Shown here one piece after another: positions 5,890 through 62,252 of a DNA stretch of 64,000 bases. Made by a program: the position numbers and the translations under genes. The notes under the pieces were generated by a model. The model did not search any database. It was not told the DNA's origin and saw only the letters and a program-made list of their open reading frames with translations. The stretch spans positions 62,001 to 126,000 of IMG/VR virus record IMGVR_UViG_3300046003_007892; one strand, written 5' to 3'. Every line of letters starts with the position of its first letter. The stretch's first letter is position 1.

Positions 5890-6543
5890 CTAGTCAGTAT
5901 CGTCGTCGTTGTCAAAGGAACTGCTATTGTAGAAGTGCATGTCGAGTATGCGCGCGCCCCTGGTCGCGTCGATCATAATCTCGTCGTCGCTCGCGTAGCC
6001 ATCCCATTGATCATGAATGCTATGATGGAGGGCATCCTTGGCCGGAGAGTCCGGGATAGTCTTCATGAAGGCACTCAGGCCTTGCATGGACCACAGAACG
6101 GAATCGGCGGGGACCTCGACCTCATAGACGACCATCAGGGACTGGAGGCCCTCAATGGCGTCTCCGGGGAGATGGCGACGATGGACTTGATCGAGACTGA
6201 AGTTGTTTCGGTTGATGAAGCCATGGGCTTTTTTCAGCGAAGACGTGAACGCCTGCGGGCCCTTCTGTAGATCGAACCGGCAGTGGGTCGCCATTTCGGC
6301 CTTGAGACCACTGAACATGTCTCCGGCAACTTCGAACCGGTGAATGTCCTCTTCGGTGACGTCGTGATAGATGGCCCGGAAATATTTTCCACCGCCGAAC
6401 ACTTCCGTGTAGCCGTGGTCACGCAAGACCTGGGCGGCGTGACGCTGGTCGAACCACTGATTATGTTGGATGTAGCTAGCCAGCGCGCTCAGCGTCTCGT
6501 CGAGGACGTTCAGGCTTTCGGCGAGTGTGAGGAAGCGTCTCAT
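5890..6543 (-). CDS. late protein with capsid-targeting-like N-terminus, possibly ART-like
   Basis: TATAAATA-N5-ATG; MRRFLTLAES; AFTSSLKKAHGF. Confidence 0.7.
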   Translation of the reverse strand: MRRFLTLAESLNVLDETLSALASYIQHNQWFDQRHAAQVLRDHGYTEVFGGGKYFRAIYHDVTEEDIHRFEVAGDMFSGLKAEMATHCRFDLQKGPQAFTSSLKKAHGFINRNNFSLDQVHRRHLPGDAIEGLQSLMVVYEVEVPADSVLWSMQGLSAFMKTIPDSPAKDALHHSIHDQWDGYASDDEIMIDATRGARILDMHFYNSSSFDNDDDTD

Positions 6544-6558
6544 CCTCGTATTTATAGG

Positions 6559-7350
6559 TCAGCCGACCTTGGTGGGGTCGCTGTCGTGAAGCATCAGGTT
6601 GGCGGCGTCCTTCTGGCTCTCCAGATAGGCGTAGCCACCAGCGAACATGACACGACCTTCGCATTTGTCTTCGACCCACGCGGCGAACTCGGGCAGGATT
6701 TCGTTCCACTGCTTCATCGGCGACGCGGCGAGGCGAACGCGGTGCTCGGGAAGATCGGACCCCGTCAGATGCTTGCCCGTCTCCTTGGTCAGGTGGGTGA
6801 GTTTTTTCTCAAGGGGGCGCCGGTATTGGGGGCGAGTGCTGCCGTGCTGAATCCCGTAGCCGACGCTGATGTTGAGCGCGCCCCACCAGCCGTTCAGAGT
6901 GGGAACCGGGCCCTTCTGGCGTTCGCTCTTGAAGTCGGCCTTGGTGATGCGCTTCGCCTTCGTGAAGGTGAAGCCGGAAATCTGCGTGCCGCAGAACCAG
7001 ACGAACAGGTCGGCAGTCTGAGCTTCAGTCAGAACTCCACCCTCGGGGCCGATGTCACCGACGAAGTGTTTGTCGAAGCCCGCGTAGCGACGCAGCACTT
7101 CACATTGGAATGCAGTGAGGCGGTTGTCCTGGTAATCGTTCACGATGGCGGAGCCGTCATCGTGGCCACCCGACCTGTCGCTGTCGTCGAAGCAGAGACC
7201 GATTTCCTTGACGGCTTCCGCGTAGGCGGCCTGCACGTCGGCGATGGGGTGAGACATCTGAACTTCGAAGACGACCCAGTGGTTATGGCCATCTTCGGAC
7301 CAATCACCAACGGTGACGATAGCGCGGTGCGGGGTGTCGGTCGCAGTCAT
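6559..7350 (-). CDS. hypothetical protein
   Basis: MTATDTPH start with GGAGAG SD after early promoter. Confidence 0.75.
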   Translation of the reverse strand: MTATDTPHRAIVTVGDWSEDGHNHWVVFEVQMSHPIADVQAAYAEAVKEIGLCFDDSDRSGGHDDGSAIVNDYQDNRLTAFQCEVLRRYAGFDKHFVGDIGPEGGVLTEAQTADLFVWFCGTQISGFTFTKAKRITKADFKSERQKGPVPTLNGWWGALNISVGYGIQHGSTRPQYRRPLEKKLTHLTKETGKHLTGSDLPEHRVRLAASPMKQWNEILPEFAAWVEDKCEGRVMFAGGYAYLESQKDAANLMLHDSDPTKVG

Positions 7351-14961: not shown

Positions 14962-16470
14962 TCAAGCAAATGCTGGTTGGCTCTCCACGATCTTCTCCAG
15001 CGTGTTGAAATCGTAGAGGGTGATGTCGAGGCTGTGGTAATCGACGGTCATCTTGGCCGCCATGGCGTCCGCCATCGAGCACGCGACGGCGACGCTCGAC
15101 TGGAGCTTCACGCGGTCGAACTTGCTCCCCATGGCGTCGGTGGCTTCCTTGATGGCCGCCAAGGCTGCCTTGCCGCCGTCCGGGCTGTCTTCGAAAGTCT
15201 CGGCCTCCTCGTAGGGCTTGCCCCGGTAATCCAGACCCCGGTCGCGATTCTGGAAGAGAACGATGGCCCCATGGCCCTTGCCCTCGCCCTTCTTGTAGGC
15301 GGCGCGCACTGCCGGGCCGCAACCCTGCGTCAGCGTGCGGAGGCGCAGAAGGTCTCGATACCAGTTCTGGACGTCGAGGATTTCCTTCTCGATACCGGTG
15401 ACCTTGTCCACGACGACCATCTCCCAGGTCGCCGGAAGGTCCATTTTCTTCTTCCCGTCTGCGAAGATGTAGTTGATCTCCTCGCCCTCGTCGTTGATGC
15501 CGGAGTTGTAGCCGGTGAAGTCCCGGATGCTCGCCTTCACGGCGGAGGCATTCTTATATTTTTTCGCCGACGAGAACTTCGTCACCATCTTGGGCACGTC
15601 ACTCGTGTAGAGTTCGCCGTTGTTGGCCCACCGGGGGTCACGATGCGGCAGCATTTTCCAGCCGCCGAAATACTCGCCGGTCGCTGTATCGCGGAGAACG
15701 TAGACGAGCGTTTCCGGGATGGCCTCGGCAGTGATCGCGTCGGCGATTTGCTTGAAGGGAAGTTCGTGACCGTTGACCTTGTAGACCAACTGAGAGCCTG
15801 AGAAATCGGCACCCGACCGGTGCTCGGTGAGACCCACGGCGCACCGGTCGTAACGCTGGAACGGCACGGTGGATTTGATGGTGCTCTCGTCGTCGAACTT
15901 GACGCGCGCCACCAGCCCATCGGACAGATCGTCCGCGACCGAATAGCTGGTCCCGAACTTGTCCAGCACCGTGAACTTGGTCCCGGCCAGAAGGGTCTGG
16001 ACGACGACTTGGTGGTAATCCTTGGCGTGGTGCGACCGGCTTCCGGGGGCTTTCGGCATCCACAGCTTGATGTCCACGGTGCGATGGAAGACCCAGCGCG
16101 AGCCCGGAACCATCGTGTTGCGCTCGGCCTTGACGGTCGGCGCAGGGGCCAAGATTGAATCGGTGTCGCCGATCTCGACGACCTCCTCAACGGCCTCGAC
16201 CAGCTTCGAGAGTTCGGCCTGCCCGGTGGCCGTCACGGCGGCGGCCAGAGCGGGGTCATAGAGCCGTATGGCGGGGTTCTTGCCCCCGATTGTGATCTGC
16301 CCATCCTTGGCTTCCAGCGTGCAGACGATTTGCTTCGTCTTGGTGTTCTCGAACTCGCGCTCGATGTGCCCTGACGGTAGTGGTTTCTTGCCGCGACGCT
16401 TCCACTGCGCAGCAGTCGTGCCAGGGAAGGCGGCGATCAGGGCGTCTTTGATATTGTCGCTGCTGCTCAC
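14962..16470 (-). CDS. hypothetical protein (about 500 aa)
   Basis: GTG start by GTGA coupling. Confidence 0.75.
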   Translation of the reverse strand: MSSSDNIKDALIAAFPGTTAAQWKRRGKKPLPSGHIEREFENTKTKQIVCTLEAKDGQITIGGKNPAIRLYDPALAAAVTATGQAELSKLVEAVEEVVEIGDTDSILAPAPTVKAERNTMVPGSRWVFHRTVDIKLWMPKAPGSRSHHAKDYHQVVVQTLLAGTKFTVLDKFGTSYSVADDLSDGLVARVKFDDESTIKSTVPFQRYDRCAVGLTEHRSGADFSGSQLVYKVNGHELPFKQIADAITAEAIPETLVYVLRDTATGEYFGGWKMLPHRDPRWANNGELYTSDVPKMVTKFSSAKKYKNASAVKASIRDFTGYNSGINDEGEEINYIFADGKKKMDLPATWEMVVVDKVTGIEKEILDVQNWYRDLLRLRTLTQGCGPAVRAAYKKGEGKGHGAIVLFQNRDRGLDYRGKPYEEAETFEDSPDGGKAALAAIKEATDAMGSKFDRVKLQSSVAVACSMADAMAAKMTVDYHSLDITLYDFNTLEKIVESQPAFA

Positions 16471-20331: not shown

Positions 20332-20419
20332 TGGAGACTGCCGGAGGGCTCGAACCTCTGGACTTCCTGCCCGCTCTTTAGTGTCGCCAGTTTAGGAAAC
20401 TGGTGCGGGGACGGCAGTC
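20332..20419 (-). tRNA. atypical D-armless tRNA-like RNA, anticodon CCU (Arg)
   Basis: acceptor GACUGCC/GGCAGUC, U73, CCA; T-loop UUCGAGC; AC arm CCAGU-UUCCUAA-ACUGG; 9 nt in place of D-arm; 27 nt variable region. Confidence 0.55.
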
Positions 20420-20443
20420 GTAGCTCAACGATAAATAGGGAGT

Positions 20444-20977
20444 ATGAATATTGAACTACTCCAAGAATATATCGAGCAGGGTCTGTCCAGCTATCAGATC
20501 GCGGCCAAGACCAATAAGGCGGCGACGACCGTCCGATACTGGATAAAGAAGCACGGCCTCAGCATTTCAAAGCCTGATAAGCCGGATAACCATTGCGCCC
20601 GGTGCGACACCGTCAAGACCAGAGACGACTTCTACCAATACGACACCAAGCGGAGGACGACCTACTGTAAGCCCTGCATGGCGTCGTGGATGAAAGATCG
20701 CTGTCGGAAGCTCAAGGCCCTGGCGGTGGAATATGCGGGAGGCTGCTGCAAGGGCTGCGGCTACGACAAATATCAGGGTGCTCTAGACTTCCATCACCGG
20801 GACCCGGCGCAGAAGGATTTCTCCATTGCTGCCAACATGCGGCGCGGAGACCTCAGCGAGACCATGAAGGCCGAGATCGATAAGTGTGTTCTCCTTTGTG
20901 CTAACTGCCACCGCGAGGCTCACGGCGGACTACGGGATTGGAAGATGGAGGGCCCTGAGAGAATCGAACTCTCGTGA
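20444..20977 (+). CDS. HNH homing endonuclease with HTH and Zn-finger
   Basis: ALDFHHRDP, LLCANCHREAH; TAAATA-N6-ATG; antisense inside tRNA operon. Confidence 0.9.
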   Translation: MNIELLQEYIEQGLSSYQIAAKTNKAATTVRYWIKKHGLSISKPDKPDNHCARCDTVKTRDDFYQYDTKRRTTYCKPCMASWMKDRCRKLKALAVEYAGGCCKGCGYDKYQGALDFHHRDPAQKDFSIAANMRRGDLSETMKAEIDKCVLLCANCHREAHGGLRDWKMEGPERIELS

Positions 20978-21019
20978 AGTGATTAAAAGTCACCTATTCT
21001 GCCATTGAATTAAGGGCCC
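20946..21019 (-). tRNA. tRNA-Lys(UUU), canonical length
   Basis: loop CUUUUAA, U73, CCA. Confidence 0.9.
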
Positions 21020-21022
21020 ATC

Positions 21023-21116
21023 TGGAGAACGCGGTGGGACTCGAACCCACGGGGTCAGGCTTGCACCTGTTACGGGCTTAAAAGGCCCGGCCTCTCGCCA
21101 CTGAGGTGACGCGTCC
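21023..21116 (-). tRNA. tRNA-Lys(UUU) with long variable arm
   Basis: 94 nt; CGGGC-CUUUUAA-GCCCG; V-arm CAGGU-GCAA-GCCUG; U73, CCA. Confidence 0.8.
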
Positions 21117-21130
21117 GTTCAGAAGAAACT

Positions 21131-21217
21131 TGGAGGATTGGATGGGACTCGAACCCATGATGAGCTTACGCTAGCGGGGTAAGAACCCGCGCCTCTCGCC
21201 GCTGAGGTGACCAATCC
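21131..21217 (-). tRNA. tRNA-Lys(CUU) with long variable arm
   Basis: 87 nt; GCGGG-UUCUUAC-CCCGC; V-arm AGC-GUAA-GCU; U73, CCA. Confidence 0.8.
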
Positions 21218-21235
21218 GAGAAGTGGTGTGGGTGG

Positions 21236-21311
21236 TGGTGAACGCGCTCGGGTTCGAACCGAGGACCAACAGATTAAGAGTCTGTCGCTCTACCAACTGA
21301 GCTACGCGTCC
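21236..21311 (-). tRNA. tRNA-Lys(CUU), canonical
   Basis: loop CUCUUAA, A73, CCA. Confidence 0.93.
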
Positions 21312-21386
21312 GTTACCACGGAAGGATTTGTTGGGAGCGTCATGGCTTCAAGCACACGAACGAAACCCGGCCACAGCTTTTGGCTG

Positions 21387-21428
21387 TTACCTGGATTTCC
21401 GTTTCGAGAAGGTGCGAAGCGAGGTCAT
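21387..21428 (-). CDS. candidate leader peptide MTSLRTFSKRKSR of tRNA operon 2
   Basis: ATG 8 nt after TAAATA; ends AAA CGG AAA TCC AGG TAA. Confidence 0.55.
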   Translation of the reverse strand: MTSLRTFSKRKSR

Positions 21429-21436
21429 GATGTTTG

Positions 21437-21466
21437 TATTTAGCCTGAGGGCTGCGTTTCTGTCAA
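21437..21466 (-). promoter_or_regulatory. tRNA operon 2 promoter
   Basis: TTGACA-N16-GCTAAATA. Confidence 0.75.
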
Positions 21467-54349: not shown

Positions 54350-55909
54350 GTGGGACGTAATCCGCTAACGAAGACCTTCGACCACCAAACCGAAGAGACT
54401 TCCATCTATCAGGCCTGGGAAACCAGTGGCGCCTTCAAGCCATCAGGCAAAGGGGAACCCTATTTCCTCCCCATGCCCCCGCCGAACATCACCGGCATTC
54501 TGCATATGGGCCACGCCCTGTTTGCAACCCTTCAGGACATCAGCACGCGATTCAACCGGATGCGGGGGCGCAATACCCTCTGGCTGCCGGGGACCGATCA
54601 CGCCGGGTTGGCCACGCAAGCCAAGCTGGACGAACTCATGATCGCTCAGGGGCTCGACCCGCAGGGACCGGAGTTCGACGCGTTCGCTGCCGACTACAAG
54701 GCCAACCTGAAGAGCACCATCACGGGTCAGCTTCGCCGTTGTGGCGCGTCTGCTGACTGGTCCAGAGAGACCTTCACGCTCGACGACGATTACAGCGCAG
54801 CCGTCATCGCCGCCATGGAGAAATGCCATGAGGCCGGGATGCTCTACCAGCGGGACGGCCAGTGGTGGCTCGACATGGAACCATTGGCGGCTGAACTCCT
54901 GTCCGAGATGGACGCGGGGAGCCTGGAGATCATTCCCTCGGGCGGTGAAGGCACGCTGCGCAACTTCCTGACCAAGATCGAGCCGTGGTGCATCAGCCGT
55001 CAAATCCGCTGGGGTCATCGTTTGCCGATCTGGAAACGGAACGGCATTCGCTCCGGCATCCAGCGCATCAACGAGTTCACGATCAGCGCGACCTGTCCGG
55101 GAGACCCCCAGGATTGGACGCAGGAAGAAGGATGTCTGGATACGTGGTTCTCTTCGGCCCTCTGGCCGTTCGCCACGCTGGGTTGGCCCAAAGACACTCC
55201 CGACATGCGGACCTTCTACCCGGCCGCCATGATCGAGACCGCCGACGACATCCTGTTCTTCTGGTGCGCCCGCATGCTCATGATGGGGCTCCTCCTGACT
55301 GACCAGATGGCCTTCAAGACAATCTTCCTGCACGGTCTCATCCGGGACAAGGACGGGCGCAAGATGGCCAAGTCCATCGGCAACGGCATCGACCCCCTAG
55401 ATATCATCGAGAAGTTCGGCTGCGACGCCATGCGGTTCGCTCTGGCCGAAGATGCCACGCCGGGCCAGGACATGCGGATGTGGGATGAAAAGTTCCAAGC
55501 CGCGAAGGGACTGCGGACCAAAATCTGGAACGCATCCCGGTATGCGATCTCGCACTGGGACCGCATCGGCCACGGTCGTCTCGCATTCCCGTCCCAGCAT
55601 CCCGATGACATCGCCATCCGGGCCCGGCTAGACGAAACCATCCAGGAAATGACTGCCATGCTAGAGGGGCTTCGCTACCACGAGGCCGCCTTCACCATTC
55701 GGCAGTTCATCTTCAATGACCTGTGCGGGACCTACATCGAGCAGACCAAGTCTCGGCTCTACGATGAGAATGACATGGCGGCCAACGCGACCCTCATGGA
55801 AACCCTCCATCAGACCCTACGTCTCCTCCACCCGTTCATGCCTTACGTCACGGAGAGGATTCGGGCAGCCTACTCGCCAGACCCCTTGATCACGACCGAC
55901 TGGGTGTAG
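54350..55909 (+). CDS. valS: valyl-tRNA synthetase, minimal (no CP1 editing domain)
   Basis: PPPNITGILHMGH, WCISRQ, LDTWFSS, KMAKS; 519 aa. Confidence 0.85.
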   Translation: MGRNPLTKTFDHQTEETSIYQAWETSGAFKPSGKGEPYFLPMPPPNITGILHMGHALFATLQDISTRFNRMRGRNTLWLPGTDHAGLATQAKLDELMIAQGLDPQGPEFDAFAADYKANLKSTITGQLRRCGASADWSRETFTLDDDYSAAVIAAMEKCHEAGMLYQRDGQWWLDMEPLAAELLSEMDAGSLEIIPSGGEGTLRNFLTKIEPWCISRQIRWGHRLPIWKRNGIRSGIQRINEFTISATCPGDPQDWTQEEGCLDTWFSSALWPFATLGWPKDTPDMRTFYPAAMIETADDILFFWCARMLMMGLLLTDQMAFKTIFLHGLIRDKDGRKMAKSIGNGIDPLDIIEKFGCDAMRFALAEDATPGQDMRMWDEKFQAAKGLRTKIWNASRYAISHWDRIGHGRLAFPSQHPDDIAIRARLDETIQEMTAMLEGLRYHEAAFTIRQFIFNDLCGTYIEQTKSRLYDENDMAANATLMETLHQTLRLLHPFMPYVTERIRAAYSPDPLITTDWV

Positions 55910-61919: not shown

Positions 61920-62252
61920 TTATCTAAGGAGCAGCGAGGCGAGGTGATCGGTCTTCTCTATCGGGACAGATGCCGATTCGACCCGATCAATTTTCAGGAG
62001 GGTCTGGTGGCTGAGATAAAACGAGATGCAGTCCGTGTGGGTCTCGAAGTTGACGGTGAAAATCAGGAAAGCGTCATCGGCCACGGAGATGACGTCAATG
62101 TCCTTGAACTGATACCACAAGGTCTGCCCGCGATACCTAGAGCGTACTTCGCAGAAATCTTTCACGCTGCCGGTCATATAGAACCGGTAGGCAAACGGTT
62201 CTCCGGTCTCGAACTTCACTGGCCGACCATCTTGATGTGGCTGATTCGACAT
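61920..62252 (-). CDS. hypothetical protein
   Basis: 110 aa. Confidence 0.6.
   Translation of the reverse strand: MSNQPHQDGRPVKFETGEPFAYRFYMTGSVKDFCEVRSRYRGQTLWYQFKDIDVISVADDAFLIFTVNFETHTDCISFYLSHQTLLKIDRVESASVPIEKTDHLASLLLR

Follow-up and report, generated by a model that had tools for sequence, protein, structure and literature searches.

Why would a jumbo phage place, between a strong promoter and a set of tRNA genes, a tiny reading frame built from the very codons that those tRNA genes read? This question is raised by a locus on the minus strand of the 64,000-nucleotide stretch of DNA analysed here (the window; positions 62,001 to 126,000 of the IMG/VR record IMGVR_UViG_3300046003_007892), where a first-pass annotation had pointed to a 13-codon ORF ahead of four tRNA-Lys genes and a CCU tRNA-like RNA, and had interpreted it as a modular codon-starvation switch. 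In what follows, we first establish that the arrangement exists as described, then ask whether it could arise by chance, and finally ask whether it recurs elsewhere, which is where the decisive evidence comes from. Our best, moderately confident reading is that the ORF is a ribosome-mediated sensor of cognate tRNA supply that controls transcription of the tRNA genes, although the output step at this particular locus is inferred only.

The anatomy of the locus is confirmed. The -35 hexamer TTGACA lies at 21466-21461 and is followed, after N16, by the -10 element GCTAAATA at 21444-21437. The pattern TTGAC-N15-21-TAAATA occurs only twice in the 64 kb on both strands, against 0.02 expected, and the two sites are exactly the ones upstream of the two tRNA operons of the window. 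The ATG lies at 21428-21426, 8 nt after the -10 element and without a Shine-Dalgarno sequence, so that the mRNA is probably leaderless. The ORF (MTSLRTFSKRKSR, 13 codons plus stop) spans 21428-21387 and ends AAA CGG AAA TCC AGG TAA, with the cognate codons AAA, AAA and AGG at -5, -3 and -1 from the stop. A 5-bp/5-nt hairpin, ACAGC-caaaa-GCTGT, occupies 21387-21373, starting at the last A of the stop codon, and GTTTCG at 21366-21361 pairs with CGAAAC at 21406-21401 in the minimum-energy fold. This pairing is part of a long imperfect hairpin at 21420-21345 (dG -34.5, z -1.9), whose 5' arm is codons 3-13 of the ORF and whose 3' arm is the downstream RNA. The spacer before the first tRNA (21351-21312) is mildly C-rich and G-poor (C 33%, G 17%, 88th percentile), and neither a consensus terminator scan nor refolding with the ribosome-covered segment masked gave an intrinsic terminator or an antiterminator in either window operon.

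Downstream, ARAGORN and Rfam find four tRNAs with Lys anticodons, namely CUU at 21311-21236 (canonical, 71.7 bits), CUU at 21217-21131 (44.8 bits), UUU at 21116-21023 (45.9 bits) and UUU at 21019-20946 (canonical, 64.7 bits). The two middle genes, however, are 87 and 94 nt long, with long variable arms (type II), U73 and an encoded CCA, while a bacterial tRNA-Lys has a type I body with a short variable loop and A73; they are tRNA-Lys by anticodon only, and the amino acid they accept cannot be told from sequence. An HNH homing-endonuclease gene on the plus strand (20444-20977; phrog_2255, E 4e-34) runs antisense to the operon, its 3' end overlapping tRNA-Lys(UUU), and separates the Lys tRNAs from the CCU element at 20419-20332. 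The latter has an 8-bp acceptor, an outer helix CCCGC/GCGGG around the anticodon hairpin, a canonical 7-nt anticodon loop UUCCUAA of the Y-U-NNN-R form, a T arm and an encoded UCCA, but no D arm, and it is called neither by ARAGORN in standard, intron or mitochondrial mode nor by the Rfam tRNA model. A structural scan hits it against 0.16 expected hits per window, and its topology, namely acceptor, short linker, outer helix enclosing the anticodon hairpin, extra segment, T arm and CCA with an Arg anticodon, is shared with conserved ACG-loop, D-arm-less tRNA-like genes of phages Rogue (7105-7187 of sequence L005) and Gurke (15077-15159 of sequence L016). In that pair, the anticodon stem, T stem and outer helix show compensatory changes, but there is no sequence homology to the window element, so common descent is not shown. 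A U-rich tract (TTTTATTTTGAC, 20331-20320) directly follows the CCA of the tRNA-like RNA and may mark the end of the transcription unit.

Operon 1, also on the minus strand, has the same design. Its promoter (TTGACC-N17-TATAAATA, 2957-2927) precedes, by 5-8 nt as in operon 2, the ATG of a leader ORF at 2921-2886 (MKTRSNRLRRI), in which AGG, AGA and ATA again sit at -5, -3 and -1 from the stop. A hairpin, ACTCC-ttccc-GGAGT, at 2886-2872 starts at the last A of the stop and is part of a longer hairpin with the ORF as its 5' arm. The genes at 2833-2682 are tRNA-Arg(UCU) at 2833-2758 and a CAU tRNA at 2756-2682, followed by a U-rich tract. The CAU tRNA may be Met or Ile2: its BLAST neighbours were uninformative, and it has C4:G69 and C5:G68, as does E. 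coli tRNA-Ile2. The C-rich tract is clear here (C 50%, G 25%, 98th percentile), but weak in operon 2.

Could such a match arise by chance? Within the window, the 3 of 10 and 3 of 12 cognate codons are only moderately significant, with p = 0.002-0.03 per leader, whether estimated by shuffles, by all 579 short ATG ORFs of the window or by a binomial on trinucleotide background. Combining the two leaders by Fisher's method (p = 0.016 and 0.013) gives about 0.002. The other two reading frames hold 0-1 cognate triplets. That said, leader 1 also carries AAG and AGG, and therefore matches the codon set of operon 2 almost as well as its own, which makes the claimed own-operon specificity weak inside the window.

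A direct test of conservation led nowhere, no relative of the window's own leaders existing in any collection searched. Namely, searches of IMG/VR, metagenomes and genomes with an exact 33-mer of the CCU element, both flanking proteins and the type II tRNA signature returned only the source contig (240 kb) or distant phages, and homologues of the upstream gene at 53-56% identity sit in contigs without tRNAs, the nearest homologous neighbourhoods lacking the tRNA operon. Among GenBank phages there is no DNA-level relative of the region beyond the tRNAs, and no homologue of the CCU element was found. Sinorhizobium phage Phosso, the nearest cultured relative, has no tRNAs in the 48 kb we guessed to be syntenic.

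The comparison with other phage tRNA clusters is far more informative. In phiCbK-like Caulobacter and Brevundimonas phages (48 GenBank records) and three uncultivated jumbo phages, short, mostly leaderless ORFs sit between a promoter and a tRNA cluster, and are built in frame from codons read by that cluster. Eleven further leaders are enriched for codons read by their own cluster, with binomial p from 1.5e-2 down to 1.4e-11 and runs of 12-14 consecutive cognate codons; together with the two window leaders and CcrSC/BL47, 15 leaders were tabulated. Matched leader/cluster pairs beat mismatched pairs by permutation (p <= 1e-4), and across the 11 leaders tested for frame, cognate triplets make up 50% in frame against 24% and 16% out of frame. 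The layout TTGAC[AC]-N15-17-8mer-N5-9-ATG is shared between the window and the leaders of Rogue, Gurke and L007 (L006, L007 and L008 designate further leader-bearing sequences in our comparison). What is more, Rogue, L006 and L008 have a terminator plus an antiterminator whose 5' strand lies in or just after the regulatory codons. In Rogue, the antiterminator is -29 kcal/mol against -30.5 for the terminator, with a 1:2 hairpin over the regulatory codons, and these elements are invariant across Karma, Rogue and Gurke and present in the 48 GenBank records. In L007, by contrast, the terminator abuts the stop codon and no antiterminator was found, so the sign of regulation may differ between designs. 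The L006 leader has no GenBank homologue, and no matching leaders were found in the other tRNA-rich phages examined, namely Streptomyces phage StarPlatinum, Microbacterium phage Big4, DSS3_MAL1 and Agrobacterium phage Atu_ph07.

A terminator-less miniature like that of the window is found in phage CcrSC, where a leaderless 15-codon ORF with AGA, AGG, CGG and CGG, its cognate codons at -4, -3 and -2, is followed 19 nt later by tRNA-Arg(UCU) and tRNA-Arg(CCG). In BL47 and RB23 the start, stop, length and the Arg codons are invariant, while 7 of the other 9 codons change the amino acid. In all four window-type leaders (five sequences folded), the last regulatory codons form the 5' arm of a hairpin around the stop. 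The CcrSC and BL47 spacers have C of about 50% and G of about 20% by our count from the alignment, but are only 19 nt long. Leader and cluster content also vary together, down to the level of Arg isoacceptors. In particular, Trp appears in the leader where tRNA-Trp has joined the cluster, CGT, CGC and CGA are used where the cluster encodes Arg-ACG, and Asn and Tyr codons rise in the leader of Gurke, whose cluster encodes those tRNAs. Finally, five orphan Arg codons in the Rogue and Gurke leaders are explained by unannotated Arg-like tRNA genes in the same clusters.

Taken together, we think it more likely than not that the 13-codon ORF, and its twin before operon 1, is a translated regulatory leader, which senses how well the cell currently decodes the codons served by the downstream tRNA genes. 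In this view, transcription starts at or next to the ATG, and a 70S ribosome translates the leaderless ORF and must decode AAA, AAA and AGG in its last five codons, which form the 5' arm of a hairpin enclosing the stop codon. If cognate charged tRNA is scarce, the ribosome would dwell there, holding the hairpin open and covering the stop-proximal spacer, and this would favour continued transcription into the tRNA genes; when supply is ample, the ribosome would leave and output would fall. Such a scheme is feasible, since leaderless mRNAs are translated efficiently in Caulobacter (PMC4117421). The analysis itself shows the anatomy, the in-frame codon match, its recurrence and conservation in other phages, and the canonical terminator/antiterminator alternatives in relatives, while the transcription start, translation of the window ORFs, the sign of regulation and the output step, including any dependence on Rho, are inferred. 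Among the mechanisms considered, the output step in the window is most likely Rho-dependent termination on the ribosome-free, C-rich leader, by analogy with tnaC and mgtL, an effect on processing or stability being the alternative.

The observation of the first-pass annotation is thus real, whereas its interpretation is supported only in part. Its claim that the matching of leader codons to the downstream tRNAs is no accident is borne out, as the matching is a designed, recurrent feature that is found in independent phage tRNA clusters. On the other hand, the switch-like output at this locus remains an inference, the reading of AGG by the CCU RNA is a prediction from its anticodon loop, and the suggestion that the device counters anticodon nucleases is pure speculation, on which nothing in the sequence bears.

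Of the alternatives, the best surviving, although unlikely, is that these are chance ORFs inside ordinary 5' leaders of tRNA precursors, the functional elements being the promoter and the long leader hairpins, acting in precursor stability or as RNase III/E/P processing signals, with the ATG, the stop and the rare codons as by-products of an A/G-rich initial transcribed region. Three cognate codons per leader, the long hairpins, the absence of a terminator and the cross-match of leader 1 to operon 2 all speak for it. Against it, both ATGs sit at the predicted transcription start of a promoter type found nowhere else in the window, the cognate codons lie in the ATG frame at the same -5/-3/-1 positions in both leaders, the CcrSC, BL47 and RB23 twin keeps frame, length and cognate codons while the rest diverges, and ten or more other phage leaders show the same matching. 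Slightly less likely still is a translated leader with the opposite, pyrBI-like sign, in which a ribosome that promptly reaches the end of the ORF blocks the stop-adjacent hairpin and permits read-through, while slow translation lets the hairpin form and lowers tRNA output, making this a feed-forward device that produces tRNAs only while translation runs. Indeed, the hairpin starts at the stop codon in both window leaders and in L007, where it is a true intrinsic terminator with no detectable antiterminator, and one can argue that with such short ORFs a ribosome stalled upstream cannot prevent a co-transcriptional hairpin. However, the relatives that do have antiterminators (Rogue, Karma, Gurke, L006 and L008) have trp-type geometry, which gives read-through on stalling, and in the window-type leaders the cognate codons cluster in the last 3-5 codons, exactly where a stalled ribosome would cover the hairpin. 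Moreover, positive feedback on scarcity would arguably make little physiological sense.

It is very doubtful that the ORFs encode functional basic micropeptides, such as RNA-binding or anti-defence peptides, merely co-transcribed with tRNAs. The window, CcrSC, L006 and L008 peptides are Arg/Lys-rich, and some homologues are annotated as hypothetical proteins (Karma gp083, CcrSC gp541), but composition follows the tRNA set and not a peptide motif, the leader of L007 being His/Ser/Ala-rich before His/Ala/Ser tRNAs. In addition, the peptide sequence is not conserved among Bertelyviruses whereas the cognate codons are, and synonymous codon choice matches specific isoacceptors; at 11-13 residues, the peptides are too short for family assignment. 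Least likely is a T-box-like, RNA-only sensor in which leader triplets pair with anticodons without translation, since, although codons complementary to the operon's anticodons do lie in a structured leader, Rfam finds no family other than tRNA in the region at gathering score or at E <= 10, the enrichment is specific to the frame set by a conserved ATG and stop, and up to 25 different triplets per leader cannot each be specifier loops.

A bolder generalization, which we consider about as likely as not, is that phage tRNA gene clusters are autoregulated by such barcode leaders, each a short, usually leaderless reading frame that samples, codon by codon, the tRNA species encoded downstream and converts ribosome dwell time into transcription read-through. 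The class would span the model phage phiCbK and its relatives, which carry classical attenuators, and unrelated jumbo phages, with the window holding a terminator-less miniature form with three sensing codons packed against the stop. Because the sensor would report functional decoding capacity, it would also up-regulate phage tRNA genes when a host anticodon nuclease depletes, for example, tRNA-Lys. Why phages carry tRNA genes, and how these are controlled, has been debated for 50 years, the main ideas being codon compensation, replacement of degraded host tRNA and escape from anticodon nucleases. A codon-matched leader would be the first cis-regulatory logic described for tRNA clusters, would show that the phage measures decoding capacity for exactly the codons it supplements, and would extend leader-peptide attenuation from single-amino-acid biosynthetic operons to multiplexed control of RNA genes, an idea for which Caulobacter crescentus with phiCbK or CcrSC is a tractable model. 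Full-text literature searches and the phiCbK genome paper gave no report of leader-peptide control of tRNA genes or of type II Lys tRNAs in phages, although absence from the literature covered is not proof of absence. The leaders also have annotation value, as their codon content predicts which tRNAs a cluster encodes, and here exposed non-canonical tRNA genes that standard finders miss.

How does this arrangement compare with known systems? T-box riboswitches share the logic of sensing tRNA status to control genes of the aminoacylation and decoding system, but bind uncharged tRNA directly, without translation, and have a conserved T-box sequence; no T-box is detected here. In the pheM leader of the pheST (Phe-tRNA synthetase) operon, a component of the translation apparatus is likewise controlled by hungry codons for its own amino acid, but that leader controls a synthetase rather than tRNA genes, uses a single amino acid and is cellular, not phage-encoded. 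The tnaC (tryptophanase) and mgtL leaders, in which Rho-dependent attenuation is governed by a ribosome near the leader's stop codon, have regulatory codons at the 3' end of a very short ORF, a C-rich, G-poor tract immediately after the stop and no intrinsic terminator, which fits window operon 1, CcrSC and BL47. Here, however, the C bias of operon 2 is weak, the spacers are short (19-75 nt) and lead into structured tRNA, no boxA or rut consensus was demonstrated, and Rho dependence is inferred by analogy alone. With the leader-peptide attenuators of amino-acid operons (trpL, hisL, leuL, pheL, thrL, ilvL), the window shares the promoter-proximal short ORF enriched in regulatory codons, and Rogue, Karma, Gurke, L006 and L008 also share the full 1:2, 2:3 and 3:4 alternative hairpins with a U-tract terminator. 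What differs is that the regulated genes are tRNAs and not biosynthetic enzymes, that the leaders carry a mixed barcode of up to about 8 amino acids and many synonymous codons mirroring the cluster instead of a run of one amino acid, that most are leaderless, and that the two window examples lack the terminator/antiterminator. Also close are the unannotated tRNA-cluster leaders of Dolichocephalovirinae (phiCbK, Karma, Rogue, CcrSC, Gurke and others) found in this study. While they have no sequence homology to the window's leaders, and the window phage belongs to another lineage, its nearest relatives being Phosso, at 47% amino-acid identity on one protein, and PA5oct-like jumbo phages, they share with it a promoter of the form TTGAC[AC]-N15-17-8mer followed by a leaderless ATG, leader codons that match the cluster, the rare type II 'Lys' tRNAs and, in the CcrSC Arg/Arg operon, the same terminator-less miniature layout.

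The feature lies on the minus strand, and in transcription order it begins with a promoter consisting of TTGACA (21466-21461), a 16-nt spacer and GCTAAATA (21444-21437), followed eight bases later by an ATG (21428) that opens the ORF MTSLRTFSKRKSR, whose last codons, AAA CGG AAA TCC AGG, precede a TAA stop ending at 21387. A hairpin of 5 bp with a 5-nt loop (21387-21373) begins with the last A of the stop, and it is followed by GUUUCG (21366-21361), which pairs with CGAAAC (21406-21401). In the minimum-energy fold the whole 3' two-thirds of the ORF is the 5' arm of a long imperfect hairpin, with an energy of -34.5 kcal/mol and a z-score of -1.9 against shuffles. The genes downstream are tRNA-Lys(CUU) (21311-21236), two type II, long-variable-arm tRNAs with anticodons CUU (21217-21131) and UUU (21116-21023), tRNA-Lys(UUU) (21019-20946) and a tRNA-like RNA with anticodon loop UUCCUAA (20419-20332). 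An HNH homing-endonuclease gene (20444-20977; phrog_2255, E 4e-34, with no Pfam or NCBIfam hit) is inserted antisense, on the plus strand, inside the tRNA operon, its last ~32 nt overlapping the 3' end of tRNA-Lys(UUU).

Operon 1, also on the minus strand, repeats this plan, with a promoter at 2957-2927, the ORF MKTRSNRLRRI at 2921-2886 and a hairpin that again starts at the last A of the stop, after which come tRNA-Arg(UCU) and a CAU tRNA (2756-2682). The latter has C4:G69 and C5:G68, the acceptor pairs that mark E. coli tRNA-Ile2 for lysidine formation, and if it is Ile2, it reads the ATA that is the last sense codon of leader 1. Both operons end with a U-rich tract (20331-20320 and 2681-2670, minus strand) directly after the CCA of the last tRNA or tRNA-like gene, and the last acceptor stem may double as a terminator hairpin. 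In this sense, the arrangement described in the first-pass annotation is indeed present in the sequence.

Is the codon match more than chance? The promoter pattern TTGAC-N15-21-TAAATA occurs twice in the 64 kb on both strands, against 0.02 expected, and both sites are those in front of the two leaders. What is more, the codons served by the window's tRNAs are its rarest, namely AAA at 11.5, AGG at 5.5, AGA at 5.2 and ATA at 5.0 per thousand in long ORFs. Leader 2 has 3 of 12 cognate codons and leader 1 has 3 of 10, and when compared with shuffles, with all 579 short ATG ORFs of the window or with a trinucleotide background, each leader gives p = 0.002-0.03, while our Fisher combination of p = 0.016 and 0.013 gives about 0.002. 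The other two frames hold 0-1 cognate triplets. That said, leader 1 also carries AAG and AGG, and the claim of the first-pass annotation that each leader matches its own operon is therefore not clean within the window. In both leaders, the cognate codons sit at positions -5, -3 and -1 from the stop. Alone, this evidence is suggestive rather than decisive.

The window's leaders have no relatives in any collection searched. The source is a 240-kb IMG/VR contig whose nearest cultured relative, judging by one ATPase, is Sinorhizobium phage Phosso (47% amino-acid identity), followed by PA5oct-like jumbo phages. However, the two unusual type II 'Lys' tRNAs do have homologues, which occur in phiCbK-like Caulobacter phages, in Brevundimonas phages and in several uncultivated jumbo phages. 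In the inspected phage sequences, denoted here by L numbers (L005 being phage Rogue, L016 Gurke and L024 CcrSC), such tRNAs are found at L001:3004-3185, at L016:9002-9088, in L006, L008, L013 and L014, and at L024:2101-2187. They have a long variable arm, Lys anticodons CUU or UUU, a U73 discriminator and an encoded CCA, and their assignment to Lys rests on the anticodon alone. In phiCbK-like phages they are the only 'Lys' tRNAs and are annotated as plain tRNA-Lys, while in the window, L006 and L008 each anticodon has one canonical and one long copy. The D-arm 20-mer is absent from 185,579 bacterial and archaeal genomes, the one hit being a chance match and not a tRNA, and no literature report of such tRNAs was found.

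Inspection of the tRNA clusters of those phages revealed short ORFs between a promoter and the first tRNA whose composition mirrors the cluster. In particular, L007:10383 is a 33-codon ORF with 25 codons for His, Ala or Ser, all read by the following His, three Ala and four Ser tRNAs (p = 1.4e-11; a run of 14), whereas L006:3450 has 13 of 20 codons for Leu, Arg, Lys or Trp before a cluster encoding only those four. In phage CcrSC, L024:9007 has 13 consecutive cognate codons before Val, Ile, Val, Gln, Asn, Arg-ACG and Phe, including CGT, CGC and CGA, the three codons that an inosine-34 Arg tRNA reads. Finally, Karma, Rogue, CcrSC and L013 have a Pro/Thr/Lys/Leu/His/Ala/Ser leader before the matching cluster, annotated only as a hypothetical protein, in which a Trp codon is present only in CcrSC, where a tRNA-Trp has joined the cluster. 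Matched leader/cluster pairs score far above mismatched ones (a mean of 2.0 against 0.76; permutation p <= 1e-4), and cognate triplets make up 50% of the leader frame against 24% and 16% of the other frames. That said, ORFs upstream of the Glu/Asp tRNA pair (L016:7022-7195, which is Gurke GURKE_03950; L001:1523-1585; L013:617-682) are only weakly or partly enriched in Glu and Asp codons, the 57-aa ORF of Gurke having an acidic C-terminal half, and these may or may not be leaders of the same kind. Streptomyces, Microbacterium, Ruegeria and Agrobacterium phages with many tRNAs, among those examined, show nothing similar, and the design is therefore lineage-restricted.

How might such leaders act in these relatives? 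In Rogue, the Phe/Val/Ile/Gln/Arg leader is followed by a perfect terminator (-30.5 kcal/mol, with a U tract), and leader nucleotides 50-66 can pair either with the 5' arm of this terminator (-29 kcal/mol) or, alternatively, with the preceding regulatory codons. This is a textbook 1:2 / 2:3 / 3:4 attenuator, in which a ribosome stalled on the regulatory codons favours the antiterminator. These segments are invariant between Karma, Rogue and Gurke while their flanks diverge, and the element is present in 48 GenBank records, almost always unannotated. L006 and L008 have analogous antiterminators that involve the last leader codons, whereas in L007 the terminator stem starts inside the stop codon and no antiterminator was found. 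The promoter layout TTGAC[AC]-N15-17-8mer-N5-9-ATG is shared by the window's two operons, L007, Rogue and Gurke, which implies leaderless mRNAs, and Caulobacter translates leaderless mRNAs as efficiently as leadered ones (PMC4117421).

A twin of the window's miniature form is found in phage CcrSC, where a two-gene operon, tRNA-Arg(UCU)+tRNA-Arg(CCG), is preceded by a promoter and a leaderless 15-codon ORF containing AGA and then AGG CGG CGG CGC TAA, followed by a 19-nt C-rich spacer with no terminator before the tRNAs. In BL47 and RB23 (86% identity) the ATG, the stop, the length and these Arg codons are invariant, while seven of the other nine codons change the amino acid. Selection is therefore on the codons and the frame, not on the peptide. 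The same genome uses CGT, CGC and CGA in the leader of the cluster that encodes Arg-ACG, and it is here that the modular, isoacceptor-level matching proposed in the first-pass annotation is seen cleanly. In all four window-type leaders (five sequences folded), the last regulatory codons form the 5' arm of a hairpin that encloses or abuts the stop codon.

While the anatomy, the in-frame match and its recurrence and conservation elsewhere are established by the analysis, the manner in which the window's element works is inferred. Namely, we infer that the ORF is translated from a leaderless transcript and that ribosome dwell time at AAA, AAA and AGG, or at AGG, AGA and ATA in operon 1, reports the supply of the operon's own products. 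In this view, a dwelling ribosome would keep the stop-enclosing hairpin open, cover the start of the spacer and thereby increase transcription into the tRNA genes. The output step is not visible in the sequence, as there is no intrinsic terminator or antiterminator in the window's leaders, and Rho-dependent termination on the ribosome-free leader is, on present evidence, only the best candidate. It is favoured by the stall site lying next to the stop, by the C-rich and G-poor spacers and by analogy with the tnaC and mgtL leaders, although the spacer bias is strong in operon 1, CcrSC and BL47 but weak in operon 2. A pyrBI-like response of opposite sign, or an effect on precursor processing or stability, cannot be excluded. 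We hold the reading of the window's own instance with moderate confidence, and the interpretation offered in the first-pass annotation, that of a modular codon-starvation switch controlling phage tRNA supply, is supported in part, its suggestion that the switch counters anticodon nucleases being no more than a speculative corollary.

The CCU element is not called by ARAGORN or Rfam. However, a simple structural scan (T loop, T stem, 7-bp acceptor) finds exactly seven sites in the window, the six tRNAs and this element, where 0.16 hits are expected by chance. The same scan uncovers unannotated tRNA-like genes at the ends of the Rogue and Gurke clusters. One pair (L005:7105-7187 and L016:15077-15159) has an ACG anticodon loop and no D arm, with an outer helix enclosing the anticodon hairpin, a T arm and a CCA end, and shows compensatory changes in three helices, this being the topology of the window element, while a second pair carries a CCG loop. 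Altogether, unannotated tRNA-like genes ending in CCA and missed by ARAGORN sit inside phage tRNA clusters at L005:7105-7187 and 7195-7278 and L016:15077-15159 and 15177-15260, and also at L005:5594-5773, L014:1009-1564 and 6293-6745, L007:8247-8321 and L016:9105-9181. They include the conserved D-arm-less Arg(ACG)-like gene and an Arg(CCG)-like gene in Rogue and Gurke, with compensatory base changes between the two phages, as well as Ser-like type II genes in Rogue, a phage reported to lack tRNA-Ser. Counting the Rogue and Gurke genes found by the scan, the five previously unexplained Arg codons in each of the Rogue and Gurke leaders become cognate, Rogue rising from 11 to 16 of 30 and Gurke from 11 to 16 of 29. 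This reciprocal fit makes it plausible, but not proven, that the window's CCU RNA decodes AGG, as the first-pass annotation had it.

Two further genes touch on aminoacylation. The window encodes, at 54350-55909 on the plus strand, a shortened valine--tRNA ligase-like protein of 519 aa, which hits NCBIfam valS at E 1e-163 but below the curated cutoff. Here, the match covers profile positions ~352-686 plus an N-terminal piece, so that a large internal or terminal part of a normal ValRS is missing. Phage CcrSC, in turn, is annotated with a histidyl-tRNA synthetase next to its tRNA clusters (L024:1-199; record 78778-79356). Together, these genes suggest that such phages invest broadly in the aminoacylation system.

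Full-text literature searches and the phiCbK genome paper gave no prior description of the arrangement reported here. The principle of leader-peptide attenuation is classical, and it is known for trp, his, leu, pheA and pheST, with Rho-dependent variants in tnaC and mgtL, while T-boxes sense tRNA without translation and none is detected here. What appears new, in comparison with these systems, is the target, namely tRNA genes, in phages, the multiplexed leader, which mirrors a whole cluster at the codon level, and the terminator-less miniature form in the window and in CcrSC.
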